DNA of 64,000 nt from Hyalangium minutum. Its GTDB lineage: Bacteria; Myxococcota; Myxococcia; Myxococcales; Myxococcaceae. This document shows positions 33,849 through 56,211 of the stretch, piece by piece. A program made the position numbers and the translations under genes. Location of the stretch: the NCBI RefSeq assembly GCF_000737315.1, contig NZ_JMCB01000018.1, positions 124,001-188,000 of the forward strand. The letters are read 5' to 3'. The notes under the pieces were generated by a model. That model was given only the letters and a program-made list of their open reading frames with translations, had not been told where the DNA came from and did no database searches. Numbering within the stretch: position 1 is the stretch's first letter; each line of letters begins with the position of its first letter.

Positions 33849-34931
33849 TTACGGGTTCTGCTTCACCGGCAGCACGATGCGGAAGGTCGTTCCAGCCCCG
33901 GGCTGGCTGCGCACGTCGATGCGGCCCCGGTGCCGCGCCACGATGCTGTACGAGAGTGCCAGCCCCAACCCTGTCCCCTTCCCCACCGGCTTCGTCGTGA
34001 AGAAAGGATCGAAGATGCGCGTCAGGATCTCCGGCGCGATCCCCTCGCCGGTGTCCTCAATTTCCACGAACACCTGCTCGGTCCCGCTGGTCCCCGTCCG
34101 CACCGTGATCGTCCCCCGCTTCCCCTTGATCGCCTGCGCCGCGTTCACCAGCATGTTCAGGAACACCTGGTTCAGCTGTGACGGCAGGCACTCCACCTCC
34201 GGCAGCGCCCCGTACTCCCGCACCACCTCCGCCACGTACTTCACCTCGTTGTTCACAATCGTCAGCGTGCTATCGAGCCCCTTGTGCAGGTCGGCCCACT
34301 GCCACTGTGCATCGCTCACATGCGAGAACTCCGTCAGATCCCGGATGATCTGCCGCACCCGCCGCAGCCCCTCCGTCGACTCGCTCACCACCTCCAGCGC
34401 GTCCTCCCGTAGCACCCCCAGCTCCGCCTCCTCCTTCCGCGCCTCCAGCCGGTTCCGCGCCTCCTCCCCCAGCCCCACCTCCTCCGCCTCGTACGCCCCA
34501 ATCAGCTTCAGCAACCCCGCCACGTAGTGACGCAGCGTCCCCAGGTTGCTGCTCACGAACCCAATCGGGTTGTTGATCTCGTGCACCAGCCCCGCCGTCA
34601 GCTGCCCGATTGACGCCATCTTCTCCGACTGCAGCAACTGGCTGTGCGTGTCCTCCAGCTTCCGGATCAGCGCCGCCTGCTCCGCCTTCTCCGCCAGCAG
34701 CGCCTCCTCGATGCGCTCCCGCCCCGCCAGCTCCTCGCGCAGCTGATCGTTCCGCGACGTCAGCTCCCGCGACGTCAGCTCCAATGAGCGCTCGATCAGC
34801 TGCCGATCCTCGTCCGCCGCCAGGTAGGCCTCGCTCACCGCCTTCAGGAAGGACTCCATCCCTGCGGGCCACTTCTCAGGCTCGCCGAAGAACCGCTGCA
34901 GCTGTCGCTCGAGCAGCTTGTGGTAGCTCAC
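33849..34931 (-). CDS. Cytoplasmic NtrB-like histidine kinase with no recognisable sensor domain
   Basis: QSEKMASIGQL..GLVHEINNP H-box, NQVFLNMLVNA, DTG.G, FDPFFTTKPVGKGTGLGL; GTG start overlaps the FIST stop. Confidence 0.9.
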   Translation of the reverse strand: MSYHKLLERQLQRFFGEPEKWPAGMESFLKAVSEAYLAADEDRQLIERSLELTSRELTSRNDQLREELAGRERIEEALLAEKAEQAALIRKLEDTHSQLLQSEKMASIGQLTAGLVHEINNPIGFVSSNLGTLRHYVAGLLKLIGAYEAEEVGLGEEARNRLEARKEEAELGVLREDALEVVSESTEGLRRVRQIIRDLTEFSHVSDAQWQWADLHKGLDSTLTIVNNEVKYVAEVVREYGALPEVECLPSQLNQVFLNMLVNAAQAIKGKRGTITVRTGTSGTEQVFVEIEDTGEGIAPEILTRIFDPFFTTKPVGKGTGLGLALSYSIVARHRGRIDVRSQPGAGTTFRIVLPVKQNP

Positions 34932-36064
34932 GATTCCGAGAACGCCGTGATGGTCATGGTCTGGTTGTGCAGCTCACACCGCGTCACCGCTCCGCTCGGG
35001 CAGATCTCCCCATACGAGTAGAAGCCTGTCAGCACGGGGCCCGTCCCGAGCACCTCTCGCACGCACTCCACCTCCTCCTCCACGCGCTGCTGGAGCACCA
35101 GCTTGCGCCCCACACAGCTGATCAGCACCGCCAGCTCCGGCCGGAAGCTCCCCAACCGCTCCAGCCCCGCCCTCGCCGCCCCCGCCGCTCCATCAATGAG
35201 CCGGTCGAAGTTCGCCTTCATCAGCCGTGCGTAGGCCCCTTCCGGCATGTCGCCCGCGAAGGTCATGCTCTGCTCCCGCTCGTCGATGCTCAGGACCGTC
35301 CGGACCAGCACCCGGCCCTCGTCCCCTCGCAGTGCCAGGGGAAACCGCAGCGCCGAGGCCGGAAGCCCCGCCGCGTGCGGCCCCAGGTATTCCTTATAGA
35401 GCGCCAGCGCCGAGCGCCCATCCAGCTCGTAGAGCACGTTCCTCCGCGAGCGAGTGATTCGCCGCTCCGGGCCAAAGGCATCCCAGCCCCCCACCGAGCC
35501 GTAGCCCACGTGCAGCTGCTCGCCACAGAAGCCCACCGCAGCAATCAGCCCCGCCGCGGGCACGCCATTGGCGCACACCACCGTGTGCTGGAAGTGCGGC
35601 CCATCCCCCGCAAGCCCCCCCGTCAGCCCCACCGAGTCCGGCAGGTTCGCCCGCAGCCCTCGCACCAGCTCCGTGCCGTTGACCTTCAGCCCGTCCGACA
35701 GCACGAGCACCTGCGTGAGCCCCGGCCGCTGCAGCGCCTTCGCCAGCGCCGCTCCCGCCGCGTAGCTCTCTTCCATTGAGCCCACCGGCACCTGCGCCAG
35801 GTGCACCTGTGTCCGCAGGAACCGCACCGCCGTCACCACCAACGAGTCGTCACAGACCGCCGTGCCGCAGATCTCCCCCGCAGTCGAACAGCCCACCAGG
35901 AGCGCCTCTGGGTACCACTCGCGGATCTGCCGCATGGCCGAGGGTGCTCCCAGCCGCGCCGTGGCCCCAAACAGCAGCACCAGCTGCGCCTCGGAACCCG
36001 CGCCCCCCGGCGCCGTCTCGCGCCAGCCCTCTGCGGCGGTCCACGTCTTTTGCTCGACCTTCAT
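34928..36064 (-). CDS. FIST (FIST_N plus FIST_C) sensory protein, NosP-like
   Basis: VGCSTAGEI, VLSDGL.VNG.ELV.G, TGGLAGD, GWDAFG, NVLYELDG, LISCVGRK.VL and GFYSYGEI...LHNQTMT motifs; SD GGAGG. Confidence 0.9.
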   Translation of the reverse strand: MKVEQKTWTAAEGWRETAPGGAGSEAQLVLLFGATARLGAPSAMRQIREWYPEALLVGCSTAGEICGTAVCDDSLVVTAVRFLRTQVHLAQVPVGSMEESYAAGAALAKALQRPGLTQVLVLSDGLKVNGTELVRGLRANLPDSVGLTGGLAGDGPHFQHTVVCANGVPAAGLIAAVGFCGEQLHVGYGSVGGWDAFGPERRITRSRRNVLYELDGRSALALYKEYLGPHAAGLPASALRFPLALRGDEGRVLVRTVLSIDEREQSMTFAGDMPEGAYARLMKANFDRLIDGAAGAARAGLERLGSFRPELAVLISCVGRKLVLQQRVEEEVECVREVLGTGPVLTGFYSYGEICPSGAVTRCELHNQTMTITAFSES

Positions 36065-36177
36065 CCGCGCCTCCGCCCACAGCAGCATCTCCCTGTCAAT
36101 GATGCTTGAGCCGCACGCCTCCTGCGAAGACTTCAGACGCCTCGCACCCCGCGTGTACCCATCCTGACCGCCAATCC

Positions 36178-36194
36178 CCGGAATGCCGATTGCA
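36178..36194 (+). promoter_or_regulatory. Weak candidate sigma54 promoter for the NtrC-type gene
   Basis: CCGGAATGCCGATTGCA: GG(36180-81)-N10-GC(36192-93). Good -12 (TTGCA), poor -24. Confidence 0.3.
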
Positions 36195-36221
36195 AGACCG
36201 TGGTATTGAGGCCTCGTACCC

Positions 36222-37640
<1,419 letters not shown>

Positions 37641-37643
<3 letters not shown>

Positions 37644-37687
37644 CAGCCCGTCACACCCTCCCCCGCCGGGTTTTGACAAAATGTCCC
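37641..37687. promoter_or_regulatory. Two candidate enhancer (UAS) boxes
   Basis: TGACA-GCCC-GTCAC (37641-54) and TGACA-AAAT-GTCCC (37674-87); semi-palindromic, 33 bp apart, about 100-150 bp upstream of the -24 box. Confidence 0.5.
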
Positions 37688-37788
37688 AGCCCCCGAAACC
37701 CGTCGCTCGCCTGCTCCCGGTGTGGGTCCTACCTGGAATAATTCCGCGGACTTGGCCGTAGGCCACGGGTTGTCCGCCGCCCTGTGGG

Positions 37789-37804
37789 TGGCACTTCGCT
37801 TGCT
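37789..37804 (+). promoter_or_regulatory. Sigma54 (-24/-12) promoter of the gsp operon
   Basis: TGGCAC-TTCGC-TTGCT matches TGGCAC-N5-TTGC exactly; ends 29 nt before the gspC ATG. Confidence 0.85.
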
Positions 37805-37833
37805 CAACACCCAGCAGCTCCCTTGGACGTGTG

Positions 37834-38757
37834 ATGGAACTCCTCTTCCGCAAATACTTCTGGACCGTGAACCTCGTGTTCATCCTGCTCGTTGCCTGGC
37901 TGGTAGCGCGCACGGCGAACCTGTTCGTGGAGTCCGCGATCGCGCCCGCCCCCAACGCGGAGCCCGCGGTGCGCACCCCGCAGCGCCTCCAGGAGACCCA
38001 GCAGCTGGCCTCGCTGGACATCGACCGCCTGTCCAAGCTCACCGGCATCAAGATCCCCGAGCCTGAGCCCGTCGTGCAGGAGCCCACCTCGGCCCCGGTC
38101 GTCGACGAGAACGCCGAGCCCGTGAAGAGTGGCCTGCGCGTGAAGCTGCTCGGCACCCTGGTGTCCGTCGACAAGAACTGGTCCTTCGCCTCCGTGCAGG
38201 ACATGACCACCCAGCGCTCGCAGACGTACATGGTGGGGGATCCCATCCAGTCCGCCACGGTGACGGACATCCAGCGCGAGCGGGTGATCATCCTCAACAA
38301 CGGCCGCCGGGAGTTCATCGACGGCCAGCCGGGAGACGGCAGCATGCCGACCCCCACGTTCACGCCTCCTCCCGTGGCCTCGGCCGCGCCGGCCGCGCCC
38401 AACAGCGGCCTGGGCAACGGCATCCGCGCCGTCAGCGAGAACGAGTACGAGGTGCCGCGTGGGGAGATCGACAAGACGCTGGCCAACCTCAACGAGGTGG
38501 CCATGCAGGCGCGCATCGTGCCCGCCTTCAAGGACGGACAGGCCCAGGGCTTCAAGCTCTTCTCCATCCGCCCGGACTCCATCTACTCGAAGATCGGCGT
38601 GCAGAACGGAGACGTCATCCGCCGCATCAACGGGTTCGACCTGAACAGCCCGGAGAAGGCCCTCGAGGTCTACTCCAAGCTCAAGGAAGCTCCTCGCATC
38701 GAGATCGAGATCGAGCGTAACGGCGCGCCGATCCGCAAGACGTACAACGTCCGCTAA
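37834..38757 (+). CDS. gspC: Type II secretion protein GspC (TM, HR domain, PDZ)
   Basis: N-terminal TM; KLLGTLV HR domain; PDZ GFKLFSIRPDSIYSKIGVQNGDVI; first gene of the gsp cluster. Confidence 0.9.
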   Translation: MELLFRKYFWTVNLVFILLVAWLVARTANLFVESAIAPAPNAEPAVRTPQRLQETQQLASLDIDRLSKLTGIKIPEPEPVVQEPTSAPVVDENAEPVKSGLRVKLLGTLVSVDKNWSFASVQDMTTQRSQTYMVGDPIQSATVTDIQRERVIILNNGRREFIDGQPGDGSMPTPTFTPPPVASAAPAAPNSGLGNGIRAVSENEYEVPRGEIDKTLANLNEVAMQARIVPAFKDGQAQGFKLFSIRPDSIYSKIGVQNGDVIRRINGFDLNSPEKALEVYSKLKEAPRIEIEIERNGAPIRKTYNVR

Positions 38758-38778
38758 CCCCGCAGTGCAAACCCTTCC

Positions 38779-41376
38779 ATGAAGACGCTCTCGCCCCGGT
38801 CGCTCCTGCTGTGCCTGGCGCTGGCAGCCTCGCCCGCCCTGGCTCAGCGCCCTGTCTCGCCCCCCGCCGCTCCTCGCGGGGAGCGGCAGATCAATCCGCA
38901 GCCCGCACCCGGCGTCACCGCCGGCGGTGAGGGAACTCCCAAGGCCGAGGGCGGCCGCACCACGCCCACCTGCGAAGAGGCCCGGCGCCGCGCGCGCTAC
39001 GGCATCTACTTCGACAAGGTGGACATCGAGAAGCTGGTGCAGACCGTCTCGGATGCCACCTGCAAGACGTTCATCCTCCCGGAGAACGTGCGTGGGAAGA
39101 TCTCCATCATCGGCCCGGAGAACGGCCGCGTGGAGGTGGACGCCGAGCAGTTCTACGCCGCCTTCCTGGCCGCGCTCGACGCCAACGGCCTGTCCGTGTA
39201 CCCCCACGGCCGGTTCCTGAAGATCGTCGACAAGCGCTCGGCGAAGCAGAACCCCATCCCGACGATCGTGGACGCGGACACTCCGTACACCACGAACGAG
39301 CAGATGGTGACCAAGCTCTTCAAGATCCGGTACGTGGAAGTGGAGCCGCTGCGCGGCGTGCTGCAGCAGCTGGTGTCCAAAGACGGCGACACCATCCCGT
39401 ACCCGCCGGACACGGTCATCGTGAACGACGTGGGCTCCAACATGCACCGCCTGGAGCGCATCATCGCCCAGCTGGACACGCGCGCCTCCAGTGACGAGCT
39501 GCGCATCATCCAGGTGCAGTTCGCCACCGCCAATGACGTGGCCAGCACCGTGCAGAAGCTCTTCGAGTCCAAGTCCCGCCCAGGCCAGCGCACCGGCGGC
39601 TTCATCCCCAACGTGTCGCCAGGCGCGCAGCCGGGCGAAGTCGCCGTCCCGGGCCAGTCAGGAGAAGCCTCCGGCGGGCCGGTGACGCTGTCGCAGATCA
39701 TCCCGGACGAGCGCACCAACAAGCTCATCGTCGTGGCCAGCCCCGCCGCCTTCGAGCGCATCCTTCAGATCGTCCGCGAGGTGGACGTGCCCACGGACGC
39801 GGGCGGCCGCATCAACGTCTACCCGCTGGAGAACGCGGACGCCGAGGAGCTGGCCAGCACGCTGCAGACGCTGGCGCAGGGCACCGCCAACCGCCCGCGC
39901 ACCCCGATACCGGGGCCGCCTCCCGGGGGCATCCGCGCCTCCCCCACGGCCGCCGAGCTGTTCTCCGGCGAGGTGAAGATCTCCGCGGACAAGTCCACCA
40001 ACGCGCTGGTGATCGTCGCCAGCCAAGCGGACTTCCGGAACATCATCCGCGTCATCGAGCAGCTGGACATCCCCCGGCGCCAGGTCTTCGTCGAGGCCGT
40101 CATCATGGAGGTCAACCTGGACCGGAACGCCGAGTTCGGCATCAACTTCCACAGCGGCTACAAGCTGAACACGGACCAGGGCTCCGTGCCGGGCCTGTTC
40201 GGCACCAAGTACACCAGCCAGGGCCTGCCGCCCTCGTTCTCGCTGGCGAACCTGGCCAGCTTCGGTGGCTTCCTCGCCGGCCTGCAGGGCCCCGTCATCC
40301 CGGAGCTGCAGAAGCTGGGCATCGACATCCCCGCCTTCGGCGTGGTGCTGCACGCGCTGCAGCAGAGCTCGGACGTGAACGTGCTCTCCACGCCGCACAT
40401 CCTCACCAGTGACAACGAGGAGGCGGAGATCACCGTGGGCCAGAACGTGCCCTTCCAGTCCGGCTTCTCGCCCACCGCGCTGGGCACGGGCCTGGGCACC
40501 ACCGGCACCACCGGCGGCATCAACCCCTCGCTGCTGGGTGGCCTGGGCGGCCTGGCCTCTCAGTTCGCCCCCATCACCCGCCAGAACGTGGAGCTGAAGC
40601 TCACCGTCAAGCCGCAGATCAACGAGAGTGACTTCATCCGCCTCGTCATCACCGAGCAGACGGAGGAGATCGCCTCCAGCGATCCGGTGCTGGGCCCCAC
40701 CACCTCCAAGCGCAGCGCGAAGACGACGGTGGTCGCCAAGGATCAGGAGACGGTCGTCATCGGCGGCATCATGCAGGACCGCTCCATCGAGTCCGTGGCC
40801 AAGGTGCCCATCCTCGGTGACGTGCCGCTGCTCGGGCACTTCTTCCGCGAGACCACGCGCAAGAAGACGAAGACCAACCTGCTGCTGTTCCTGACGCCCT
40901 ACATCATCAAGGACCAGAGCGACTTCCGCACCATCTTCGAGCGCAAGATGAAGGAGCGGCAGCAGTTCGTGGAGCAGTTCTACGGGCAGGTGCCGGGCTA
41001 CGACGTGGCCGTGGACTTCAGCCGCAAGCCGGGCCCGCTGTCGCGCATGAACCAGTCCGTCCTCCGCGAGCAGCAGAAGCTGGAGAACGGCGGCCCGGGC
41101 ACCCCCGGGGAGCGCATCATCAAGCCCGGCAGCCAGGGCCGTCAGAATGCCCCCGGCACGGGCACCCAGGCGCCTGCTGGGACGCAGGACAGCCAGGGGA
41201 CCGGGGTGGCGCCCGCCGTGGCGCCCGCCGCGAGTTCACCGGCCGTGGAGACGGGGCCCGAGGTCCGGGAAGCACCGGCGGCGCCCCAGGGTTCCGAAGA
41301 ATCAGTGCCTACGCCCGAGGCCCCTGAGCGGCTGCGCATCCAGCCGGACACGGGAGCGGGAGATCGAACCCCATGA
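38779..41376 (+). CDS. gspD: Type II secretion secretin GspD
   Basis: Signal peptide; N-domains; QVFVEAVIMEV, NVLSTP.ILT.DNEEAEI.VGQNVP and KVPILGDVPLLG.FFR...KTNLLLFLTP motifs. Confidence 0.95.
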   Translation: MKTLSPRSLLLCLALAASPALAQRPVSPPAAPRGERQINPQPAPGVTAGGEGTPKAEGGRTTPTCEEARRRARYGIYFDKVDIEKLVQTVSDATCKTFILPENVRGKISIIGPENGRVEVDAEQFYAAFLAALDANGLSVYPHGRFLKIVDKRSAKQNPIPTIVDADTPYTTNEQMVTKLFKIRYVEVEPLRGVLQQLVSKDGDTIPYPPDTVIVNDVGSNMHRLERIIAQLDTRASSDELRIIQVQFATANDVASTVQKLFESKSRPGQRTGGFIPNVSPGAQPGEVAVPGQSGEASGGPVTLSQIIPDERTNKLIVVASPAAFERILQIVREVDVPTDAGGRINVYPLENADAEELASTLQTLAQGTANRPRTPIPGPPPGGIRASPTAAELFSGEVKISADKSTNALVIVASQADFRNIIRVIEQLDIPRRQVFVEAVIMEVNLDRNAEFGINFHSGYKLNTDQGSVPGLFGTKYTSQGLPPSFSLANLASFGGFLAGLQGPVIPELQKLGIDIPAFGVVLHALQQSSDVNVLSTPHILTSDNEEAEITVGQNVPFQSGFSPTALGTGLGTTGTTGGINPSLLGGLGGLASQFAPITRQNVELKLTVKPQINESDFIRLVITEQTEEIASSDPVLGPTTSKRSAKTTVVAKDQETVVIGGIMQDRSIESVAKVPILGDVPLLGHFFRETTRKKTKTNLLLFLTPYIIKDQSDFRTIFERKMKERQQFVEQFYGQVPGYDVAVDFSRKPGPLSRMNQSVLREQQKLENGGPGTPGERIIKPGSQGRQNAPGTGTQAPAGTQDSQGTGVAPAVAPAASSPAVETGPEVREAPAAPQGSEESVPTPEAPERLRIQPDTGAGDRTP

Positions 41377-43187
41377 CTGACCTGACCGACGCCACTCGCA
41401 CCGCCGAACAGCCCGCCGAGGCCCCCCCGCGCAACGAGGCCACTCACATCGTCGCGAACGGCCCTGCCTTCCTGGCGGGCCGTGCCATCGGTGAAATCCT
41501 CCGCGCCACGACTGGGCTGTCCGAGGAGAAGCTCCGTGAGGGGCTCACCGCCCAGGCGGAGAAGGGCGGCCGGTTGGGTGAGGTGCTCGTCGGGATCAAG
41601 GCCGTCACGGAAGAGGACGTGGCCAAGGCGCTCGGGCTGCAGCTGGATCTGCCGTACCTGCAGCGCATCTTCGTAGATGAGGTGGACCCGGAGCTCGTCA
41701 AGAAGGTCCCCATCAACTTCGCCAAGCAGGCGAAGATCATCCCGCTGTCGCTCCAGAAGGACGACACCATTGCCATCGCCGTGGCCGACCCGCTGGACAC
41801 CGCGGCCATGGACCACGCGCGCATGCTCCTGGGCGCCAGCCTGGACACGCGGATTGCCCTGGCCTCCACCATCGTGGACGCCATCAACAGCGTGTACGAC
41901 CGCTCCATCAACGAGGCCGAGCAGCTCGTGGACGAGATGGAGGCCACGGACCTGGACTCCCTGGCCCACGAGCTCGAGGAGCCCAAGGACCTGCTGGACA
42001 CGGATGACGAGGCCCCGGTCATCCGGCTTGTGAACTCCGTGCTCTTCCGCGCCGCCAAGGAGCGCGCGAGCGATATCCACATCGAGCCCATGGAGCGCGA
42101 GCTGCTGGTGCGCTTCCGCGTGGACGGCGTGCTCCAAGAGGTCATCAAGCCGCCCAAGCGCTACCAGAACTCGATCGTCAGCCGCGTCAAGGTCATGGGG
42201 CAGCTGAACATCGCCGAGAAGCGCCTGCCCCAGGACGGCCGCATCCGCATCAAGCTGGCCGGCCGCGACATCGACATCCGTCTGTCCACCATCCCCACCT
42301 CGTATGGCGAGCGCATCGTCATGCGTCTGCTCGACAAGTCCGCCACGCTGTTGGACCTGTCCGAGATCGGCATGGCGCAGCACACGCTGCACGGGATGGA
42401 GGGCGTCATCAAGCGCTCGCACGGCATCATCCTCGTCACGGGCCCCACGGGCTCCGGTAAGACGACGACGCTGTACGGCGCCCTCTCCAAGATCAACACG
42501 TCGGACCTCAACATCCTCACCGTCGAGGACCCGGTCGAGTATCAGCTCAAGGGCATTGGCCAGATGGCCATCAACCCGAAGATCGGGCTGACGTTCGCCC
42601 AGGGGCTGCGCTCCTTCCTCCGCCAGGACCCGGACGTCATCATGGTGGGCGAGATCCGCGACAAGGAGACGGCGGAGATCGCCATCCAGGCGTCGCTGAC
42701 GGGCCACCTGGTGTTCTCCACGGTGCACACGAACGACGCCGCGGGCGCCGTCACCCGTCTGGTGGACATGGGCGTGGAGCCGTTCCTCGTGGCCTCGTCG
42801 CTCACGGCCATTCTGGCGCAGCGCCTCGTGCGCCGCGTGTGCCCGGACTGCCGCGTGCAGTACTCGCCCACGGATGACGAGCTCAAGGAGCTCACCCACT
42901 CGCGAGCAACTTTCAAGCAGCGCTACGGCGTGGAGAAGATCTACAAGGCCACGGGCTGCCCCAACTGCAACCGCACCGGATACCGCGGCCGTACGGGTAT
43001 CTACGAGTTCCTCCTGGTGGATGACGAGGTCCGCCAGCTGGTGCTCAAGAACGTGGACGCCGCCACCATCAAGAAGGCCGCCATGAGCAAGGGCATGCTG
43101 ACGCTGCTCGAGGACGGCGCGCGCAAGGTGTCCTTGGGAGAGACGACCATTGCCGAGGTCCTCAGCATTACGCAGGAGGACATCTAA
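41373..43187 (+). CDS. gspE: Type II secretion ATPase GspE
   Basis: ASDIHIEP, RLPQDGR, GPTGSGKTTT, TVEDPVEY, LRQDPDVIMVGEIRD, GHLVFSTVHTND and a tetracysteine motif. Confidence 0.95.
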   Translation: MTDLTDATRTAEQPAEAPPRNEATHIVANGPAFLAGRAIGEILRATTGLSEEKLREGLTAQAEKGGRLGEVLVGIKAVTEEDVAKALGLQLDLPYLQRIFVDEVDPELVKKVPINFAKQAKIIPLSLQKDDTIAIAVADPLDTAAMDHARMLLGASLDTRIALASTIVDAINSVYDRSINEAEQLVDEMEATDLDSLAHELEEPKDLLDTDDEAPVIRLVNSVLFRAAKERASDIHIEPMERELLVRFRVDGVLQEVIKPPKRYQNSIVSRVKVMGQLNIAEKRLPQDGRIRIKLAGRDIDIRLSTIPTSYGERIVMRLLDKSATLLDLSEIGMAQHTLHGMEGVIKRSHGIILVTGPTGSGKTTTLYGALSKINTSDLNILTVEDPVEYQLKGIGQMAINPKIGLTFAQGLRSFLRQDPDVIMVGEIRDKETAEIAIQASLTGHLVFSTVHTNDAAGAVTRLVDMGVEPFLVASSLTAILAQRLVRRVCPDCRVQYSPTDDELKELTHSRATFKQRYGVEKIYKATGCPNCNRTGYRGRTGIYEFLLVDDEVRQLVLKNVDAATIKKAAMSKGMLTLLEDGARKVSLGETTIAEVLSITQEDI

Positions 43188-43225
43188 CCACGGCCCCTCC
43201 TCCGGGGGGCTGGGGGTGAGCCATC

Positions 43226-44482
43226 ATGCCTGTCTTCGAGTACAGAGGTCTCAACACTGCGGGTAAGACCATCAAGGGTCTGCTCGAGGCGGAGTCCCCC
43301 AAGTCGCTGCGTGCCCAGCTCCGCAAGGACGGCATCTTCCTCACGGACGTGCTGGGCCAGGCCGAGGGCAGCCGCGGCGCCGTCCGCAAGGGCGCGGGCG
43401 CGGACCTGGCTGCCCGCGAAGTCGACTTCCGCAAGCTGGGCGGCGGCCGCGTCACCACCGAGGACATCGCCATCACCACCCGGCAGCTCGCCACGCTGCT
43501 GGGGGCGGGCGTCACCCTCATCGAGTCCCTCACCGCGCTGGTGGACCAGGTGGAGAAGGAGCGCCTCAAGCGCATCCTGTCGGACGTGAAGCAGCGTGTG
43601 AACGAGGGCTCCTCGCTGGCGGACGCGCTGGGGCAGCACCAGAAGGTCTTCGGCTCGCTCTACGTGAACATGGTGCGAGCGGGCGAGGCCTCGGGCGCGC
43701 TGGACACGGTGCTCCTGCGGCTGGCGGACTTCACCGAGAGCCAGGCCAAGCTGCGGCAGAAGATCGTCGGCACCATGCTCTACCCGGCCATCATGCTGCT
43801 GGTGGGCGGCGGCATCCTCGTGCTGCTCATGGTGGTGGTGGTCCCCAAGGTGACGAAGATCTTCGACACCATGAAGGCCACCCTGCCGCTGCCGACGCGG
43901 GTGCTCATCGCCACGAGCAACTTCCTGCAGGACTACTGGTTCATCATCTTCCCGCTCTTGGCCCTGGGCAGCTTCCTGGCGTCGCGCTACTTCGCCAGCC
44001 CCGCGGGCAAGCCCAAGTGGGACCGGTTCGTGCTCAAGGCCCCCATCTTCGGCAGCCTGGTGCGGCTGCTGGCCATCTCCCGCTTCGCGCGCACGCTGGC
44101 CACGCTGCTCAAGAGCGGTGTGCCCCTGCTGGCCGCCATGGACATCGTCAAGGCCATCATCAGCAACTCGGTGCTGTCCGACGTGGTGGAGAAGGCCCGG
44201 GACGCCATCCGCGAGGGAGAGAGCATCGCCAACCCGCTCAAGCGCTCGGGTGAGTTCCCGCCGCTCGTCTACCACATGGTCTCCATTGGTGAGCGCTCGG
44301 GCCAACTGGAAGACATGCTGCTGTCCGTGGCGGACAGCTACGAAACACAGGTGAACGTGCGCATTGGCGCGCTCACCTCCCTGCTCGAGCCACTGCTCAT
44401 CGTGTTCATGGGCGCGGTGATTGCATTCGTTGCCTTCTCGATCCTGATGCCGATTCTGCAGGTGAACTCGGCCATCCGGTAA
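43226..44482 (+). CDS. gspF: Type II secretion inner-membrane platform protein GspF
   Basis: TRQLATLLGAG, NMVRAGEASGALD.VL.RLA, MLYP and GERSGQLEDML motifs. Confidence 0.95.
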   Translation: MPVFEYRGLNTAGKTIKGLLEAESPKSLRAQLRKDGIFLTDVLGQAEGSRGAVRKGAGADLAAREVDFRKLGGGRVTTEDIAITTRQLATLLGAGVTLIESLTALVDQVEKERLKRILSDVKQRVNEGSSLADALGQHQKVFGSLYVNMVRAGEASGALDTVLLRLADFTESQAKLRQKIVGTMLYPAIMLLVGGGILVLLMVVVVPKVTKIFDTMKATLPLPTRVLIATSNFLQDYWFIIFPLLALGSFLASRYFASPAGKPKWDRFVLKAPIFGSLVRLLAISRFARTLATLLKSGVPLLAAMDIVKAIISNSVLSDVVEKARDAIREGESIANPLKRSGEFPPLVYHMVSIGERSGQLEDMLLSVADSYETQVNVRIGALTSLLEPLLIVFMGAVIAFVAFSILMPILQVNSAIR

Positions 44483-44497
44483 CGGAGAGAGACGGCG

Positions 44498-44650
44498 ATG
44501 AACGACACGCTCAACCGGTGGATTCAACGTGTCACCCTGGCGGCCATGGTCGCCCTGGCGGCGGCCCTGCTGGCTGTGGGGGTGGCCCTCTACGCTCCGG
44601 CTACCGAGGCGCATGAGTCCCCGTCGAAGAGCGCCTTGCAGCAGCCCTGA
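44498..44650 (+). CDS. Small (50 aa) single-TM protein between gspF and gspG, below the ORF-track cutoff
   Basis: Hand translation: MNDTLNRWIQRVTLAAMVALAAALLAVGVALYAPATEAHESPSKSALQQP*; SD GGAGAG; fills the gap in operon orientation. Confidence 0.7.
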   Translation: MNDTLNRWIQRVTLAAMVALAAALLAVGVALYAPATEAHESPSKSALQQP

Positions 44651-44710
44651 CAAAAACGACCCGGCACGGCCGCCCGGCCTGCCAGAAAGTCATTCCGAGG
44701 AAGGACGCTT

Positions 44711-45133
44711 ATGACGACGCAACAGACGAAGAAGCAGCAGCGCCGCCGAAACCGAGGCATGACCCTCATCGAGATCATGGTGGTGATCACCATCCTGGGC
44801 CTGATCGCCGCCGCCGTGGGCGTGGCCGTCATCCCGAAGCTCGAAGAGGCCAAGCGCGACACCGCGCGCCTGGACATCAACTCCATCCACAACGCGCTGA
44901 AGCTCTACTACACCAAGGCGGGCAAGTACCCGGACACCGCCACGGGCCTCAAGGCGCTGGTGGACACCCAGAACCTGGACAAGTTGCCGGTGGATCCCTG
45001 GGGCAACGAGTACGTCTACATGAACGAGGGCGGCAAGCCCGTCATCGTCTCCTACGGCGCGGACGGCACCGTGGGCGGTGAGGGCAGCGACCAGGACATC
45101 TCGTCCAAGGATCTGGCCGCGGCGAAGAAGTAG
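44711..45133 (+). CDS. gspG: Major pseudopilin GspG
   Basis: Class III signal RNRG|MTLIEIMVV; LPVDPWGNEY and SYGADG..GGEG.D.DI Ca-loop. Confidence 0.92.
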   Translation: MTTQQTKKQQRRRNRGMTLIEIMVVITILGLIAAAVGVAVIPKLEEAKRDTARLDINSIHNALKLYYTKAGKYPDTATGLKALVDTQNLDKLPVDPWGNEYVYMNEGGKPVIVSYGADGTVGGEGSDQDISSKDLAAAKK

Positions 45134-45156
45134 CGCGCGGCGCGAGGAGCTCTCCC

Positions 45157-45585
45157 ATGGCGACCCCTGTCACCCTCCAGACCGAGCCGATGACGCCCCG
45201 CCCGGCCCGAGTGGGGCGGTACGTGGTCGCCGCGGCGTGCGTGCTGGCCACGGCGCTGGCCTTCGGCATCGCCTACGTGACGACGGACTGGAGCCTGCCT
45301 CCGAAGCAGCGCCTGGCGCTGGAGCAGATCCGGCGCCTGGAGGGCGTCTTCAAGATGTACCACCGCAGCATGGGGCGCTTCCCGCTCGAGGAAGAGGGCT
45401 TCGAGCCGCTCATCCAGGCGAAAGTGCTCACGGAGGTCCCCGTTGATCCGTGGGGCCACCCGTACGTGTACCGGTTCAACAACGAGCACACGGGCGTCCT
45501 CTCCTTCGGCGCGGACGGCGTGCCTGGAGGCGAGGGAGAGAACGCGGATATCACCAGCGGTGGACTGTGGAGGCCTCGGCAATGA
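45157..45585 (+). CDS. Second GspG-like protein lacking the prepilin cleavage motif
   Basis: T2SS G-type body (GRFP..EEG, VPVDPWGHPY, SFGADG..GGEGENADI); the TM helix has no G|(F/M)xxxE motif. Confidence 0.8.
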   Translation: MATPVTLQTEPMTPRPARVGRYVVAAACVLATALAFGIAYVTTDWSLPPKQRLALEQIRRLEGVFKMYHRSMGRFPLEEEGFEPLIQAKVLTEVPVDPWGHPYVYRFNNEHTGVLSFGADGVPGGEGENADITSGGLWRPRQ

Positions 45586-46307
45586 CACACCTGTCTCTGG
45601 CACGGAAGCGCCGGGCCCAGCGGGGCCTCACGCTCATCGAGATCATCATCGCGCTGCTCATCGCCGCGGTGCTCTTCGGAGCGGTGGTGTCGGGCGTTGG
45701 CGCGCTCACCGGCACCAAAGCCAAGGCGTCAGCCAGCGAGCTTGCGGGCATCATCCGCTCGCTCTACGACACGGCCGCGCTCACGGGGAAGACGTGCCGG
45801 CTGGTGTTCGAGCTGCCCCAGGCCAAGAGCGAGGATCCGGTGCGCTACCACGCCGAGTGCGCCGAGAGTGGCATCACCACCTCGCGCGATCGCGAGGCTT
45901 CGCTCCGGGACGAGAACAAGGCGAGGGATGACGAGAAGCGCCAGGGCCCCAGCAAGGACCCGCGGCGCAACTTCACCTCGCGCGACAGCGGCGGGGCGCC
46001 CAGCATGCAGGATCTGATCGAGCAGGAGCAGGGCCGCGTGGAGCAGTCGGCGCGCTACTCCAGCTACACCGCCGAAGAACTGGCGCCGCGGGAGCTGGCG
46101 GGCGCCGTGTCGCTCTCAGTGTGGACGCGCCACCAGCGGACCGCGGTGGACCAGGGCGTGGCCTATCTCTACTTCTTCCCCCAGGGCTACACGGAGAAGG
46201 CCCATGTGTACGTGCGGCAGGGCGATAACGTGTGGACGCTCGTCGTCTCGCCCCTGACGGGCAAGGTGACCATCGTCTCGGAGGAACTGGAGGTGCCTCG
46301 GTCATGA
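45582..46307 (+). CDS. gspH: Minor pseudopilin (GspH/FimT-like)
   Basis: AQRG|LTLIEIII; YLYFFPQG; position in the cluster. Confidence 0.75.
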   Translation: MTHLSLARKRRAQRGLTLIEIIIALLIAAVLFGAVVSGVGALTGTKAKASASELAGIIRSLYDTAALTGKTCRLVFELPQAKSEDPVRYHAECAESGITTSRDREASLRDENKARDDEKRQGPSKDPRRNFTSRDSGGAPSMQDLIEQEQGRVEQSARYSSYTAEELAPRELAGAVSLSVWTRHQRTAVDQGVAYLYFFPQGYTEKAHVYVRQGDNVWTLVVSPLTGKVTIVSEELEVPRS

Positions 46308-47191
46308 AGAACCGCAACCGTCGAGGCTTCACCCTGCTGGAGACCGTGGTCGCGCTCGCCATCCTCGTGATGGCGCTGATGGCGATCTTCGACCTGAACT
46401 CCGGCGCGATGTCCAACCACGTCTACACCAAGCACCTCACGGTGGCCGCGTTCCTGGCCCGCTCGAAGATGACGGACCTGGAGCAGAAGCTCTACGACGA
46501 CGGCTTCAACGCCGACGACGATGAGGAGTCCGGCGACTTCTCCGAAGAGGGCTGGCCCATGTTCAAGTGGCGCGCGAAGATCATCGCGCCCAAGACGGAT
46601 GGGGTGACTCCGGACCAGCTCATCGGCGCCATCTTCAACCTCCCCATCGGCGGAGACGGGGACATGGGCGGCATCGCCTCGCTCTTCGGCGGCGGCGCGG
46701 GAGGTGACAGCAAGAGCGGTGGCGGTCCCGTTCCGGCAGCGGGTGGCATGGCTGGCATGGCCGCAGGCATGGCGCAGCCCATGTTCACCCAGATGATCGA
46801 GCAGCTGAAGAGCTCCGTGCGCGAGGTCCACCTCACGGTGACATGGAGGGAGGGCAAGCAGGTGGAGAGCATGGACGTGGTGACGCACGTCGTGTCGCTC
46901 GGGCCGGGCTCGGATCGCAACGGTGGCGCCGCAGCCGCCGCGGCCGCCGCCCGGGGCCAGCAGCCTCCGGAGACGTCCAACCAGTGGGTGAACCCCGCCA
47001 CCGGCCAGCTCGTCCCCAACCCGATCCCCGGCCCCAACGGGCAGATGCTGGACCCCGTCACCCGCCAGCCCCTCGTCAACCGGCAGCAGCAGCTGGATCA
47101 GCTCAACTCGGGTCAGATCCCCGGCGGTGGACTCAACGTGCCCAGGACGGGTGGCGGCATCTTCAACCCTCGCGGAAAGAGCTCCCAATGA
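46304..47191 (+). CDS. gspI: Minor pseudopilin (GspI-like) with long Gly/Pro-rich inserts
   Basis: RRG|FTLLETVVALAIL; ATGA overlaps at both ends. Confidence 0.75.
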   Translation: MKNRNRRGFTLLETVVALAILVMALMAIFDLNSGAMSNHVYTKHLTVAAFLARSKMTDLEQKLYDDGFNADDDEESGDFSEEGWPMFKWRAKIIAPKTDGVTPDQLIGAIFNLPIGGDGDMGGIASLFGGGAGGDSKSGGGPVPAAGGMAGMAAGMAQPMFTQMIEQLKSSVREVHLTVTWREGKQVESMDVVTHVVSLGPGSDRNGGAAAAAAAARGQQPPETSNQWVNPATGQLVPNPIPGPNGQMLDPVTRQPLVNRQQQLDQLNSGQIPGGGLNVPRTGGGIFNPRGKSSQ

Positions 47192-47859
47192 GACGCACGA
47201 TCCGGGGTTTCACGCTGATGGAGGTCATGGTCGCCGTGGCGATCACCGCCCTTATGGGCACGATGGTGGCCATGGCCTTCCAGACGGGCTTCCGCGCCAA
47301 GGAGCTGGTGGAAGGCGAGGCCGACCACTACCGCATGGTCCGCGCGGCGCTCAACCGCATGGCCCGTGAGATTGGCTCCGCGTACGTGAGCGACCGGTAC
47401 GATCCCAAGCGTTACCGGGACTCCAACGACCGGCCCACCAACTTCGTCGGCGAGCGGGACCGGCTGCTGTTCACCACGTTCGCGCACCAGCGCCTGTACA
47501 CGGACTCCAAGGAGTCTGATCAGTCCGTGGTGGAGTACTTCGTGGAGAGCTCCACGGAGAAGGGCGCGCGGAGCCGGCAGGATCTGAAGCGGCGGGAGAA
47601 CCCGAACATCGGCGAGCGCATGGACCGGGGCGGCACCACGGACGCGCTCTTCGAGGGCGTGAAGAAGATCGAGTTCGCTTACTGGGACTCCGAGCGCAAG
47701 GAGTGGGAGGACGAGTGGGACACGCGCCGCAATGAGAAGAAGTCCTTCCTTCCCACCCGCGTGCGCATCACGATCTTCGCCCTGGACGAGAACGGTAAGG
47801 AGGCGCGTTACACCACCCAGGCCCGAATCATGCTGAACACGGAGCTGCCGAGGTTCTAA
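47188..47859 (+). CDS. gspJ: Minor pseudopilin GspJ
   Basis: IRG|FTLMEVMVAV; WEDEWD and LPTRVRI motifs typical of GspJ. Confidence 0.8.
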   Translation: MRRTIRGFTLMEVMVAVAITALMGTMVAMAFQTGFRAKELVEGEADHYRMVRAALNRMAREIGSAYVSDRYDPKRYRDSNDRPTNFVGERDRLLFTTFAHQRLYTDSKESDQSVVEYFVESSTEKGARSRQDLKRRENPNIGERMDRGGTTDALFEGVKKIEFAYWDSERKEWEDEWDTRRNEKKSFLPTRVRITIFALDENGKEARYTTQARIMLNTELPRF

Positions 47860-49224
47860 ATGCCCAGGTTCTTCTCACAGACGCCCAGGCGCCGCTCCGC
47901 CCGCCCGCCCGCTTCGCCCGCGAAGCGCGATCGCCGCGCGCGAGGTGTGGCGCTCATCATCGCCGTCATCTCCATCACCCTGCTCACCGTGGTGGCGACC
48001 GAGTTCGCCTACAACACGCGTGTGGATCTGCAGCTGGCCGCCAACCAGCGGGACGAGGTGCGCGCCTATTACATGGCCCGCTCCGGCCTGTCCCTGGGGC
48101 GCCTGTTGCTGCGCTTCCAGAAGCAGGTGGACCAGACGCCCATCCCCAACCTGGGCGGCATCCTCAGCGCCCTCACGGGTGGCGGTGCCGGGGCCGCGGG
48201 AGGCCAGCAGCAGGCCGCGCAGACGCTCAACATCCAGCTCTGGAAGCTGGCGCGCGTGGACTGCCACATGCTCAAGGGCCTGGTGCGCAGCGATGTGGGC
48301 GAGGGCAAGGACGGCAAGGCCGCGGAGCCCCAGGACGAGAACTTCACCATGGAGGACGAGGACGCGGAGCAGGCGCTGGGGGCTCAGCCCCTGAAGCGCT
48401 CCTTCGGCGGCTTCGAGGGCTGCTTCCTCGCGAACATCAGCGACGAGGAGGAGAAGCTCAACATCCACCGGCTGGCGGGCCTCGCCACGGATGCGCTGCC
48501 CACCGCGGCGCGCCTGCTGGACTTGCTCGGCGACAAGCGCTTCGAGTTCCTCTTCAACCGCGACGATGCCAACCGCGTCCGCGTCACCCCGCAGGACGTC
48601 GTCATCGCCCTCAAGGACTGGGTGGACGAGGACGAGGTGCAGTCCGCCATCAACGTGGCCGATCCCGTCAACCCCTTCGCCGCGGGCTTCTCGCCCGAGG
48701 ACAGCAACTACGACCGCTTCGACCCGCGCTACGAGGCCAAGAACGCCCGCTTCGACAGCGTGGACGAGCTGTACCGCGTCCACGGCGTCACCGACATGTT
48801 CATGGCCGCCTTCCGCGACCGGCTCACCGTGTACCCGGACGTGAACTCGCGCCCCAACGTGAACACGGATGACCCGATGATGATGTACATGGCCATCCTC
48901 TCCGTGGCGGACCCCTCGCACCCGGATCCGCGGCTGAAGGATCCCGTGTTCATCAACGAGGTCATCACCCGCATCCGCTCGGCGCGCATGTTCAGCTTCT
49001 TCGGCATGTCCGTGCAGGACTTCGTCAGCGTGGTGGAGTCCGCCGGCATCCCTATCAACCCGGCCATCAAGGCCAGCGCGACCAACAACCGGCTCGTGGG
49101 TGACAAGAGCCAGACCTTCACCATCAAGTCCGTGGGAGAGGCGGGCAGCGTGCAGAAGACCATCACCGCCGTGGTCAAGCTGGACGACTCGCTCGGCAAG
49201 CTCCTGTATTGGAGAGAGGAATAA
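47860..49224 (+). CDS. gspK: Minor pseudopilin GspK
   Basis: RG|VALIIAV (no Glu+5, as in GspK); DEEEKLNI, KDWVDED, KNARFDSVDEL..VHG and NVNT motifs. Confidence 0.9.
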   Translation: MPRFFSQTPRRRSARPPASPAKRDRRARGVALIIAVISITLLTVVATEFAYNTRVDLQLAANQRDEVRAYYMARSGLSLGRLLLRFQKQVDQTPIPNLGGILSALTGGGAGAAGGQQQAAQTLNIQLWKLARVDCHMLKGLVRSDVGEGKDGKAAEPQDENFTMEDEDAEQALGAQPLKRSFGGFEGCFLANISDEEEKLNIHRLAGLATDALPTAARLLDLLGDKRFEFLFNRDDANRVRVTPQDVVIALKDWVDEDEVQSAINVADPVNPFAAGFSPEDSNYDRFDPRYEAKNARFDSVDELYRVHGVTDMFMAAFRDRLTVYPDVNSRPNVNTDDPMMMYMAILSVADPSHPDPRLKDPVFINEVITRIRSARMFSFFGMSVQDFVSVVESAGIPINPAIKASATNNRLVGDKSQTFTIKSVGEAGSVQKTITAVVKLDDSLGKLLYWREE

Positions 49225-49226
49225 AG

Positions 49227-50819
49227 ATGGCCCGCATTCTTGGCCTCGATTTGGGCAGCTACTCCGTCAAGGGCGTCCTGTTCGAGTCGAACATCCGCGG
49301 CTACACCACCAAGGCCTATACCGAGGTGCGCCGCGCCGAGGGCGACCGCACCGAGACGCTCCGCGCCGCCGTGAAGGAGCTGCTTGCCCAGCAGCCCATG
49401 CAGGCCGATCAGGTCATCGTCGCCCTGCCCGGGCCTACGCTGTTGACCCACGCCTTCACCCTGCCCTTCAGCGACCCGAAGCGGCTGGAGGCCGCCCTCC
49501 CCTTCGAGGTGGAGAGCCAGCTGCCGTTCGACCTGAGCGAGGTCCTCTTCGACTACCAGGTGGTGGGCCAGAAGGCGAAGGCCAACAGCGACGTGCTCGT
49601 GGGCGTGGTCCGCAAGGAGGAGCTGAGCTGGCTCCTGGGCCTGCTCACCGAGCTGAAGGTGGACCCGCGCGTCATCACCCACCCCGGCATCACCTACCAG
49701 AACCTCTTCATCCAGACGCCCGCCATGTTCGACGGGCTCGGTGAGGCCGAGGCGATCGCCGTGGTGGACATCGGCCACGAGCGCACCACGGTGGCCATCG
49801 GCAAGCCGGGCGTGGGCGTGGAGTTCGCTCGCACCTTCGCGGGCGGCGGCAGGGATTTGAGCCGTGCGCTCGCCGCCGAGTTCCAGACGCCCCTGGCCGA
49901 GGCCCACCAGTGGAAGGAGACCTACGGCGCCATGGCGAGCGCCGCCACGGCCCAGGGCCCCGATGCCGAGCGCGCCGCCTCCGCCTTCGTGCGCGGCCTG
50001 CAGCCGGTGCTCCGCGAGCTGCGCCCCACCTTCAAGGCCTTCACCGCCCGCACCAAGCGCAACGTGGGCGCCGTGGTGCTGTGCGGCGGCACCGCCCGCC
50101 TCAAGGGGCTCGCCGAGCAACTGGAGAAGGATCTCCACCTCCAGGTGCGCGTGCTCGCGCTGCCCAACGAGGCAGCCTCCTCCATCCCCGCGGAGGTCCA
50201 GCCCTCGGCCGTCCAGGCCTATTCGTTGGCGCTGCGCGGGCAGGCCTCGGGTGCCAAGGCCCCGCGCTTCAACCTGCGCCGTGGCGAGTTCGGCTTCAAG
50301 GGCGACTTCGACTACGTGAAGGACAAGATCGGCCTGCTGGGCTCGTTCGCCGCCACCCTGCTGCTGCTGTTCATCGCCAGCGGCGTGGTGCGCAACACCG
50401 TGCTCGCGCGCAACGAGGCCAAGGTGGACGCGGTGCTCTGCAAGACCACCGAGCGCATCCTCGGCAAGTGCGAGACCAACTATGACCGCGCGCTCAACCT
50501 GCTGCGCGGCGTGGAGAGCCCGGCCGCCGCCCTCCCGAAGGTGACGGCGGTGAACCTCCTGGCGGAGGTGACGCAGAGGATCCCCCCGGAGGTGCCCGTG
50601 AAGATCGAGCGCATCCAGATCGATCTGGAGCGCGTCATCCTCCAGGGCGAGACGAACAGCTCCAAGGAGATCGACACCCTCACCACCGCCCTGAAGACGC
50701 ACCGGTGCTTCCGCGAGGTGAACCCGGGCAAGGTGGAGAAGACGCGGGACGGTCAGAAGGTGACCTTCCGTCTGGACATCCAGGTGCAGTGCCCCAACCA
50801 GCCGGGGGCGGAGAGCTAG
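49227..50819 (+). CDS. gspL: GspL (PilM-like actin-fold domain plus TM and periplasmic domain)
   Basis: ILGLDLGSYSVK, VVDIGHERT and VLCGGTARL actin-like motifs, then a TM and a PilN-like C-terminus. Confidence 0.85.
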   Translation: MARILGLDLGSYSVKGVLFESNIRGYTTKAYTEVRRAEGDRTETLRAAVKELLAQQPMQADQVIVALPGPTLLTHAFTLPFSDPKRLEAALPFEVESQLPFDLSEVLFDYQVVGQKAKANSDVLVGVVRKEELSWLLGLLTELKVDPRVITHPGITYQNLFIQTPAMFDGLGEAEAIAVVDIGHERTTVAIGKPGVGVEFARTFAGGGRDLSRALAAEFQTPLAEAHQWKETYGAMASAATAQGPDAERAASAFVRGLQPVLRELRPTFKAFTARTKRNVGAVVLCGGTARLKGLAEQLEKDLHLQVRVLALPNEAASSIPAEVQPSAVQAYSLALRGQASGAKAPRFNLRRGEFGFKGDFDYVKDKIGLLGSFAATLLLLFIASGVVRNTVLARNEAKVDAVLCKTTERILGKCETNYDRALNLLRGVESPAAALPKVTAVNLLAEVTQRIPPEVPVKIERIQIDLERVILQGETNSSKEIDTLTTALKTHRCFREVNPGKVEKTRDGQKVTFRLDIQVQCPNQPGAES

Positions 50820-50822
50820 GCC

Positions 50823-51395
50823 ATGAAGCAACTCCTCAATGATCTGCGGCTGCGCTTCGAGCAGCTCAGCGCCCGCGAGCGGCGCCTCGTGGTGGTGGCC
50901 GGCTCCGCCGTGCTGCTCTTCATCCTCTTCATCACGGTGCTGTCCTTCGCCAACAGCGCCAACGGCTACCGGCGCCGCACCCAAGACAAGCTCGCCAAGC
51001 TCCAGGAAGTGCAGCAACTGGCGGCCAGCTACGCCCAGGCCACTGCCGCTCGCAACGCCGTGGAGCAGCAGCTGACCAGCAGCGACGTCCGCCTGCTCAC
51101 GTACATCTCCGACAAGGCCAGCGCCGCGGGCCTGGACGCCCCCAACATGACGCCCAAGGGCGAGGTGGGCATCGGCGATGGGAACATCCTCGAGAGCAGC
51201 ATCGAGCTGACCTTCACCGACGTGGACCTGCGCAAGCTGACCGACTTCCTGCGCACCGTGGAGGGCGGCCCCGGCATCATCAAGGTCAAGTACCTGCGCC
51301 TGGAGCCCCGCCCGGCCACTGACACCCTGACGGCGTGGGCCACCGTCGCCACCTACCGGCTGAAGCAAGGCACGCAGCCGTCGACTCCGCAGTGA
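50823..51395 (+). CDS. gspM: GspM
   Basis: LSARERRLVVVAG start, TM, coiled coil and ferredoxin-like C-terminus. Confidence 0.85.
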   Translation: MKQLLNDLRLRFEQLSARERRLVVVAGSAVLLFILFITVLSFANSANGYRRRTQDKLAKLQEVQQLAASYAQATAARNAVEQQLTSSDVRLLTYISDKASAAGLDAPNMTPKGEVGIGDGNILESSIELTFTDVDLRKLTDFLRTVEGGPGIIKVKYLRLEPRPATDTLTAWATVATYRLKQGTQPSTPQ

Positions 51396-51399
51396 CATC

Positions 51400-52425: not shown

Positions 52426-52428
<3 letters not shown>
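52411..52428 (+). promoter_or_regulatory. Extended -10 promoter overlapping the gspN stop; leaderless start of the hybrid kinase
   Basis: TG-A-TACGTT (52411-52419; TGA is the gspN stop), 6 nt, ATG 52426; no properly spaced SD. Confidence 0.45.

Positions 52429-56211
<3,783 letters not shown>

Follow-up and report, generated by a model that had tools for sequence, protein, structure and literature searches.

The stretch of the Hyalangium minutum genome that we analysed is 64,000 nucleotides long (contig NZ_JMCB01000018.1, positions 124,001 to 188,000; hereafter the window). On its forward strand a gene for an NtrC-type enhancer-binding response regulator of 473 amino acids (36222-37643) is followed by gspC (37834-38757), the first gene of a type II secretion system (T2SS) operon. 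The two genes are separated by a gap of 190 bp. From the stop codon of the first to the start codon of the second there are, in this order, two short palindromes (box 1, 37641-37653, and box 2, 37674-37686), a central element (37735-37763) and a sigma-54 promoter of the -24/-12 type (37789-37804, + strand). An earlier reading of the same window, made from its letters alone and here called the sequence-only reading, had taken these features for a complete control module in which the neighbouring activator directly drives the operon from gspC to gspN. We examined the locus together with its orthologues in other myxobacteria, and describe below which parts of that proposal hold.

The promoter, TGGCACTTCGCTTGCT, reads as an exact TGGCAC-N5-TTGCT at the place where it had been reported. 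It begins 45 bp before the gspC ATG (37834) on the same strand, and its GG and GC doublets lie exactly 10 bp apart, the spacing that defines sigma-54 promoters. A search for exact TGGCAC-N5-TTGCW on both strands of the window returned this single match against 0.04 expected, and with one mismatch allowed it was still the only one. Because the -12 GC falls at 37802-37803, we predict a transcription start site near 37815 and hence a leader of 19 nt.

Although the promoter is unique in 64 kb, the decisive support for the module is, as we read the evidence, the comparison across loci rather than any statistic taken within the window. Orthologous loci were gathered in three ways: by a genome scan for the activator, by a metagenome scan with an alignment of GspC, and by exact-protein look-ups in named genomes. 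The loci so obtained come from more than 80 genomes and metagenome contigs of myxobacteria, with GspC identities that range between 90% and 43%, and include Hyalangium, Stigmatella aurantiaca, Archangium gephyra, Myxococcus vastator, a strain of M. xanthus, Pyxidicoccus, and metagenome-assembled genomes (MAGs) at the level of the Anaeromyxobacteraceae. The closest named matches to the proteins of the window come from Hyalangium species, at 94-97% identity. Promoter counts given here refer to 81 non-redundant regions upstream of gspC, palindrome counts refer to 78 non-redundant loci, and adjacency of the activator was scored in the 65 loci with enough flanking sequence to tell; nine close relatives were additionally aligned with one another (alignment A2). 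Five loci (L002-L005 and L051), whose activators are 77-88% identical and have no gspC downstream, were left out of the footprinting; L002 (1-1368) and its four companions are either paralogues or rearranged loci.

Across the 81 regions, TGGCAC-N5-TTGCT was found exactly in 56, with one mismatch in 17 and with two in 4, and was missing from the remaining 4, so that 73 of the 81 carry the promoter with at most one mismatch. Its first base lies 28-81 bp ahead of the start codon in every case but one. Among the N5 spacers there are 39 different sequences, and such freedom of the spacer between fixed hexamers is the mark of selection on the -24 and -12 elements themselves. On these grounds we hold with high confidence that the gspC promoter is functional. 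The phylogenetic footprinting that the sequence-only reading had put forward as a check thus came out in its favour, in that the promoter, both boxes and the adjacency of the activator can be followed down to 43% GspC identity.

The two boxes had been described as TGACA-N4-GTCMC, namely TGACAGCCCGTCAC at 37641-37654 and TGACAAAATGTCCC at 37674-37687. They are present at these positions, the second starting 33 bp after the first, and they are conserved; the N4 register, by contrast, is one base off, and the comparison resolves both boxes into imperfect 13-bp palindromes of the form TGACA-N3-TGTCA. Box 2, TGACA-AAA-TGTCC (TGACAAAATGTCC), is the proximal and main palindrome, with its centre about -135 from the predicted start site and -109 from the T of TGGCAC. 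Box 1, TGACA-GCC-CGTCA, is the weaker and distal one, with a centre near -168 relative to the predicted start; the TGA with which it begins doubles as the stop codon of the activator open reading frame (ORF), an overlap that is shared by close relatives including M. xanthus. Within the window, enrichment of TGACA-N4-GTCMC taken alone is only weakly significant (2 matches against 0.26 expected, with 2 reached in 5 of 100 shuffles). For the palindrome TGACAWWWTGTCA with at most one mismatch, box 2 is the only match in the window, against 0.02 expected.

Among the orthologues, what recurs is TG(A/C)CA-N3-TG(T/G)CA, a 13-bp palindrome around an A/T-rich spacer, and some species carry the perfect form TGACAATTTGTCA. 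At least one palindrome with no more than one mismatch is present in 73 of the 78 loci. Palindrome density amounts to 8.6 per kb in the zone from -200 to -25, as compared with 0.037 per kb in the rest of the loci, an enrichment of about 230-fold upstream of the promoter.

Measured from the T of TGGCAC, the centres of the best sites fall mostly at -57/-58, -79 to -83, -89/-90 (27 loci), -98 to -103, -108 to -111 (19 loci) and -120, with further sites at -67/-69, and these classes step by about 10.5 bp, so that they are separated mostly by whole helical turns. A second, weaker site, in most cases over the stop codon of the activator, is found 31-33 bp further upstream (three turns), or, in deep lineages, 40-41 bp further upstream (four turns); in some deep lineages it lies instead 32 bp downstream of the main site. 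In the window, the nine close relatives and M. xanthus the second site is TGACAGSSCGTCA, placed over the activator stop codon, and in the -89 class it is a degenerate TGACGTTCCGCCC, 32 bp upstream of the main box. In alignment A2 the invariant columns gather into four islands, which correspond to box 1, box 2, the central element and the promoter, and the sequence between them is unconserved. Because the boxes stand three helical turns apart, they would face the same side of the DNA, and the region therefore has the makeup expected of an enhancer: two or more dyad-symmetric sites about 80-200 bp upstream, on one DNA face. We consider it likely, from this arrangement, that the palindromes are enhancers.

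A palindrome could in principle be the operator of a repressor or of some other regulator, or could form a hairpin that ends or blocks transcription arriving from the activator gene, and box 2 is indeed self-complementary and is flanked in several species by G+C-rich inverted repeats. When 72 orthologous 69-nt segments were folded, however, the mean z-score was -0.43 relative to flank-shuffled controls and no common extended stem emerged, which led us to reject a conserved hairpin or terminator at box 2. There is no run of T residues, and the activator-gspC gap gave no match to a known RNA element in Rfam at E values up to 1. Moreover, helical phasing to the -24 element and pairs of sites three to four turns apart are expected of an enhancer and not of a terminator. 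We therefore regard an operator or hairpin role for the palindromes as highly improbable.

Between the enhancer and the promoter lies the central element, GGAATAATTCC (37735-37745) followed after five nucleotides by CTTGGCCGTAGG, with its centre at about -75. The sequence-only reading had noted its A/T-rich first half, which is present where it was described; over the wider sample, conservation is confined to about a third of the lineages. The nine close relatives and M. xanthus share the arrangement GGAATAATTCC-N5-CTTGGCCGTAGG with little or no variation, and 24 of the 81 loci have a GGAAT..TTCC pattern in loose form. In loci with box 2 at -109 its centre falls at -48.5, and in those with the box at -89 it falls at -38; the element thus shifts by one helical turn where the box shifts by two. 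We looked for a binding site for integration host factor (IHF) at GGAATAATTCC and rejected it, as neither strand of 37730-37765, inspected by eye, fits WATCAANNNNTTR with an A/T-rich flank; the recurring central pattern, WWTCCR-N5-TTG, is one base longer than the IHF consensus and has mismatches in its core. The element is possibly a site for another DNA-bending protein or for a second regulator.

The protein encoded upstream has every domain that an activator of such a promoter would use (Pfam Response_reg, Sigma54_activat, AAA_lid_14 and HTH_8). Its receiver (Response_reg, 8e-29) has the paired aspartates, the phospho-acceptor Asp within VTDLMMPGMDG, and the conserved T and K positions. The AAA+ domain (Sigma54_activat, 3.5e-73) has Walker A as GESGTGKE and Walker B as LFLDEVGEM, and the Fis-type helix-turn-helix (HTH_8, 1.3e-12, residues 410-449) is invariant across the orthologues. 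The loop that contacts sigma-54 reads GAYTGA (residues 221-226, 36882-36899), a form found in 7 of 49 orthologues from the loci and in 47 of 148 database proteins, most of the others having GAFTGA; the F-to-Y variant of this loop is reported to be functional.

The window activator shares 87% identity with the M. xanthus protein whose gene immediately precedes gspC. Their DNA-binding regions are almost the same, the helix-turn-helix region showing one conservative K-to-R replacement, and the locus of the M. xanthus strain in our sample (L165) has the order activator, gspC, gspD together with the same box 1, box 2 and central element and the promoter TGGCACCTGGCTTGCT. The gene nla4 of M. xanthus is MXAN_2516 (PMC11980068, PMC2875238), and, judged by gene order and protein identity, the window activator is its positional orthologue.

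In 47 of the 65 informative loci the activator gene stands directly upstream of gspC on the same strand, and this holds down to 43% GspC identity. In three others it lies 0.9-2.2 kb upstream, and in the remaining 15 it is absent from the available flank. Two of the loci with a displaced activator (L089 and L094, at 1.9-2.2 kb) have an intervening stretch, which in L089 contains an ORF of about 345 codons without a Pfam match and in L094 is of similar size; in both, the palindrome and the promoter have stayed with gspC rather than with the activator gene. Autoregulation was considered and rejected, as neither a second palindrome nor a sigma-54 site was found near the activator's own start. Taken together, the domains of the protein, the conserved gene order and the overlap with box 1 suggest that the upstream response regulator probably binds the palindromes, alone or as one of several proteins.

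The arrangement is that of a well-known class of promoters. At NtrC-type promoters such as glnAp2, which are served by group I enhancer-binding proteins, dyad-symmetric sites lie 100-170 bp upstream on the same face of the DNA and act by DNA looping. The present locus resembles glnAp2 in combining a regulator of receiver, AAA+ and Fis-type helix-turn-helix domains with two dyad-symmetric sites and a -24/-12 promoter, and differs from it in its half-sites and their spacing (TGACA-N3-TGTCA) and in its target, which is a secretion machine and not nitrogen assimilation. It likewise recalls PilS-PilR of the type IV pilin genes and VasH of type VI secretion, in which a sigma-54 activator encoded beside a related envelope machine drives the structural genes of that machine; unlike those cases, the whole T2SS operon would here be driven from its first gene, gspC, and its gspD is essential in M. 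xanthus.

We propose the following course of events. RNA polymerase containing sigma-54 would wait as a closed complex on TGGCAC-N5-TTGCT (37789-37804), while dimers of the Nla4 orthologue would bind both TGACA-N3-TGTCA palindromes, centred some 135 and 168 bp ahead of the start site. Upon phosphorylation of the receiver, the dimers would assemble into an active AAA+ ring, and the DNA between would loop, possibly aided by a protein at the GGAATAATTCC element near -75. The GAYTGA loop would then contact sigma-54, and ATP hydrolysis would open the promoter, so that transcription would proceed from near 37815 into gspCDEF and probably on to gspN. We infer that it is the upstream activator, rather than another, that binds the palindromes, that the gspC promoter is the main one of the operon, and that the signal is phosphorylation by a kinase. 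An activator of this kind very probably switches the operon on. Taking the chain as a whole, we favour the interpretation that the 190-bp gap is a classical enhancer-dependent promoter of the T2SS operon driven by the upstream activator, and regard it as reasonably probable.

Several observations weigh against this interpretation. The Rayleigh statistic for the palindrome positions has its maximum at a period of 10.3-10.5 bp but counts sequences that share ancestry as independent observations, and the phasing argument therefore rests on the distance classes and not on a p-value; a few deep lineages have their palindrome off phase, at -114 to -116 or -126. The 15 of 65 loci without an adjacent activator, in which the upstream genes are diverse, retain the promoter and for the most part the palindrome, so that adjacency cannot be obligatory. 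The recognition helix, ARTIYRKL, does not vary at all, whereas position 3 of the half-site drifts between A and C; no co-variation of protein and DNA ties this activator to the site, and with a constant helix a test of helix against half-site has no power. A second kind of sigma-54 activator, with the architecture FHA-FHA-AAA+-HTH_8, is encoded downstream of gspN, at a distance of 0.1-6 kb, in all six of the genomes examined for it. Finally, M. xanthus stays viable when nla4 is disrupted by insertion, even though gspD (MXAN_2514) was shown in 2025 to be essential in that species (PMC12475490), and there must therefore be some expression that is independent of Nla4, or a substitute activator.

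The FHA-type protein is a genuine candidate for such a substitute. In the window its gene is at 58561-60198 on the + strand, and by tblastn it is 66-68% identical to the FHA activator found directly after gspN in Stigmatella and M. stipitatus. The gene follows gspN at no more than about 100 bp in Stigmatella, M. stipitatus and Corallococcus, at 3.3-3.5 kb in Cystobacter and a deep Myxococcales MAG, and at 6.1 kb in the window (the other five genes lie at L166 6114-7751, L167 6056-7690, L170 6105-7736, L168 9324-10958 and L169 12503-14131). The linkage was established in these six genomes, the 80 metagenome loci being too short to span the distance from gspC to the FHA gene. With an FHA activator past gspN in each of the six, the gsp cluster is bracketed by two different enhancer-binding proteins, and the FHA-type activator might bind the palindromes instead of the response regulator or together with it, as a redundant or hetero-oligomeric partner. 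Two redundant activators would account for the viability of nla4 mutants in the face of an essential gspD. On the other hand, it is the response-regulator gene that is physically joined to the enhancer, with box 1 over its stop codon, and that adjoins the enhancer in far more lineages; beside the FHA activator gene we found neither a palindrome nor a strong sigma-54 promoter, so that nothing suggests a regulon shared with the FHA gene. We consider it improbable that the FHA-type activator binds the palindromes. The claim that the neighbouring activator directly drives gspC to gspN gains from the full set of activator domains and from the conservation of module and gene order, with the FHA-type protein left as its rival.

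Five of the loci that have no adjacent activator (L101, L104, L107, L111 and L143) lack the palindrome as well, and carry a promoter of the TGGCAG...TTGC type, TGGCAGCGGGCTTGCT, which ends in ...TTGCC in L111. The ORF upstream of gspC in L101, the sole member scanned, is a LytS-type histidine kinase. The control region of gspC may have been rewired in this group. In two of the six genomes with an FHA activator, a gene for an extracytoplasmic function (ECF) sigma factor directly follows the activator gene, and in a third it is found about 2 kb further on.

Downstream of the promoter lie the genes of the operon. GspC is recognised by Pfam T2SSC and by NCBIfam GspC_delta (314 bits, cut-off 150), and is followed on the + strand by gspD (38779-41376; Pfam Secretin, Secretin_N and N0), gspE (41373-43187; Pfam T2SSE), gspF (43226-44482; Pfam T2SSF) and a block from gspG to gspN (44711-52413) that encodes the pseudopilins, GspK, a PilM-like GspL, an ORF of the size of GspM, and GspN. 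NCBIfam matches in the block are to GspG, GspI, GspK, GspL/PilM and GspN, and the gene calls of other genomes give the genes in the same order, there with a match to T2SSM. The 228-bp gap between gspF and gspG contains an ORF of 50 codons (44498-44650, +) with a hydrophobic core and a Shine-Dalgarno-like GGAGAG, and in a distant MAG a predicted gene of 86 amino acids occupies the corresponding position (L169 1257-1517). At the 3' end of gspF, on the + strand, the 16-mer GGGCGCGGTGATTGCA (44410-44425) has the pattern of the M. xanthus MXAN2511 promoter, GGGCGCG-N4-TTGCA; as this stretch is coding, constraint on the protein may account for its conservation.

A scan of 36000-45000 found no sigma-70-like promoter, and on the + strand of the same region no terminator, the one terminator-like match being on the opposite strand and at chance level. 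These results bear on whether the sigma-54 promoter is the main source of the transcript or a conditional booster. In the latter case, the basal and essential expression would come from read-through from the promoter of the activator gene itself or from unrecognised promoters, either of sigma-70 type or internal, and the module would explain no growth phenotype. The lack of a + strand terminator between the activator gene and gspC would permit such read-through, and nla4 mutants are viable. Myxobacterial sigma-70 promoters fit the Escherichia coli consensus poorly, which makes the negative scan weak evidence, and a sigma-54-like promoter inside the operon, ahead of gspG, is on record as a target of Nla28, with the same 16-mer pattern recurring at 44410-44425. 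Even so, no sigma-70-like site was seen in 9 kb, the near-perfect consensus and very wide conservation of the gspC promoter favour a major role, and a promoter before gspG cannot supply gspC to gspF. We judge a purely conditional, boosting role to be unlikely.

The sequence-only reading had called the module complete, and expected it to tie export to one phosphorylation signal. In this respect it went too far, as no conserved cognate kinase was found next to the activator or after gspN in the loci compared; Nla4 is itself listed as an orphan in M. xanthus (PMC3892784). Divergent from the activator gene, the window encodes a FIST-domain protein and a histidine kinase (33849-36088, -). The kinase (33849-34931, -) scores 382 bits against the NCBIfam model NF038348 "T2SS_HK", below its cut-off of 450, and matches model positions 266-574 only, in the C-terminal half, so that it is not assigned to that family. 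We rejected the pair as the cognate sensor, since these neighbours are specific to this genome: no other locus, not even that of a 97%-identical relative, has them next to the activator. A hybrid histidine kinase of 1261 amino acids with two kinase modules (52426-56211, +) starts 13 bp after gspN, so close that it and the gsp operon may share a transcript in the H. minutum genome. As a conserved partner it too was rejected: other genes follow gspN in five other genomes, the FHA activator in three of them.

For experimental work, a close precedent is NmpR of M. xanthus, which belongs to the same phylum and acts at a sigma-54 site preceded by two inverted repeats, S1 (distal) and S2 (proximal) (PMC11841059). 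It differs in its recognition sequence and spacer length, and in having a known multi-component kinase system. The NmpR sites, GCGCA-N5-TGCGC, were verified by electrophoretic mobility shift assay and by reporter mutagenesis (PMC11841059), and therefore offer a direct experimental template. The internal T2SS promoter of MXAN2511, GGGCGCG-N4-TTGCA, has been reported to be bound by the DNA-binding domain of Nla28 (PMC9765219). It is similar in being a sigma-54-type promoter in the same gene cluster bound by an enhancer-binding protein, and dissimilar in that it is internal, before gspG, matches the consensus poorly and answers to another activator, with a half-site like CTCCGCAG.

The sequence-only reading knew of no description of this link or site. 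Our search of the accessible literature found none of the Nla4-gsp link, of the palindrome, or of a connection between rpoN and gspD, with the reservation that gsp genes may be present in the Nla4 microarray data. Nla4, whose M. xanthus locus has the same boxes and promoter as the window, has been discussed with regard to ppGpp, growth and development (PMC3892784, PMC7910581, PMC11980068), and in these papers we found neither a direct target nor a binding site for it. Sigma-54 promoters before T2SS genes of the Myxococcia have, in contrast, been published: a matrix-based survey of 2025 reported that T2SS COGs including GspC, D, E and F are enriched among the predicted sigma-54 targets (PMC12316311), and the internal Nla28 target described above is a further case (PMC9765219). 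The kind of module is thus standard, and what appears to be new is this unusually well-conserved case, together with the proposed Nla4-gsp link and the palindrome.

The interest of the module stems from its target and from the experiment that it makes possible. To our knowledge, sigma-54 is dispensable in almost all bacteria. In M. xanthus its loss was reported as lethal in 1997, for reasons that had not been elucidated as of 2009 (PMC12316311, PMC2725144), and nla4 mutants of that species grow slowly in rich medium (PMC7910581). According to published work, MYXO-CTERM surface proteins, among them the kin-recognition receptor TraA, are put in place by the T2SS. As the operon's sole recognisable promoter, a near-perfect sigma-54 promoter would join the lethality of sigma-54 loss, the essentiality of gspD and the slow growth of nla4 mutants in one hypothesis: that in Myxococcus and its relatives the T2SS operon is transcribed essentially only from the gspC promoter, which would make sigma-54 vital and nla4 mutants slow. 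An essential gspD in an operon dependent on a sigma-54 promoter would be enough, alone, to make sigma-54 vital, and the activator would then be Nla4, possibly backed up by the FHA-type activator. We regard so strict a dependence as possible, though less likely than not. Should the hypothesis be wrong, the module would still be a clean and well-conserved example of an ordinary enhancer-dependent promoter; should it be right, the locus would provide the first direct target and the first binding motif, TGACA-N3-TGTCA, for the orphan regulator Nla4, and the motif could be used to search for its regulon.

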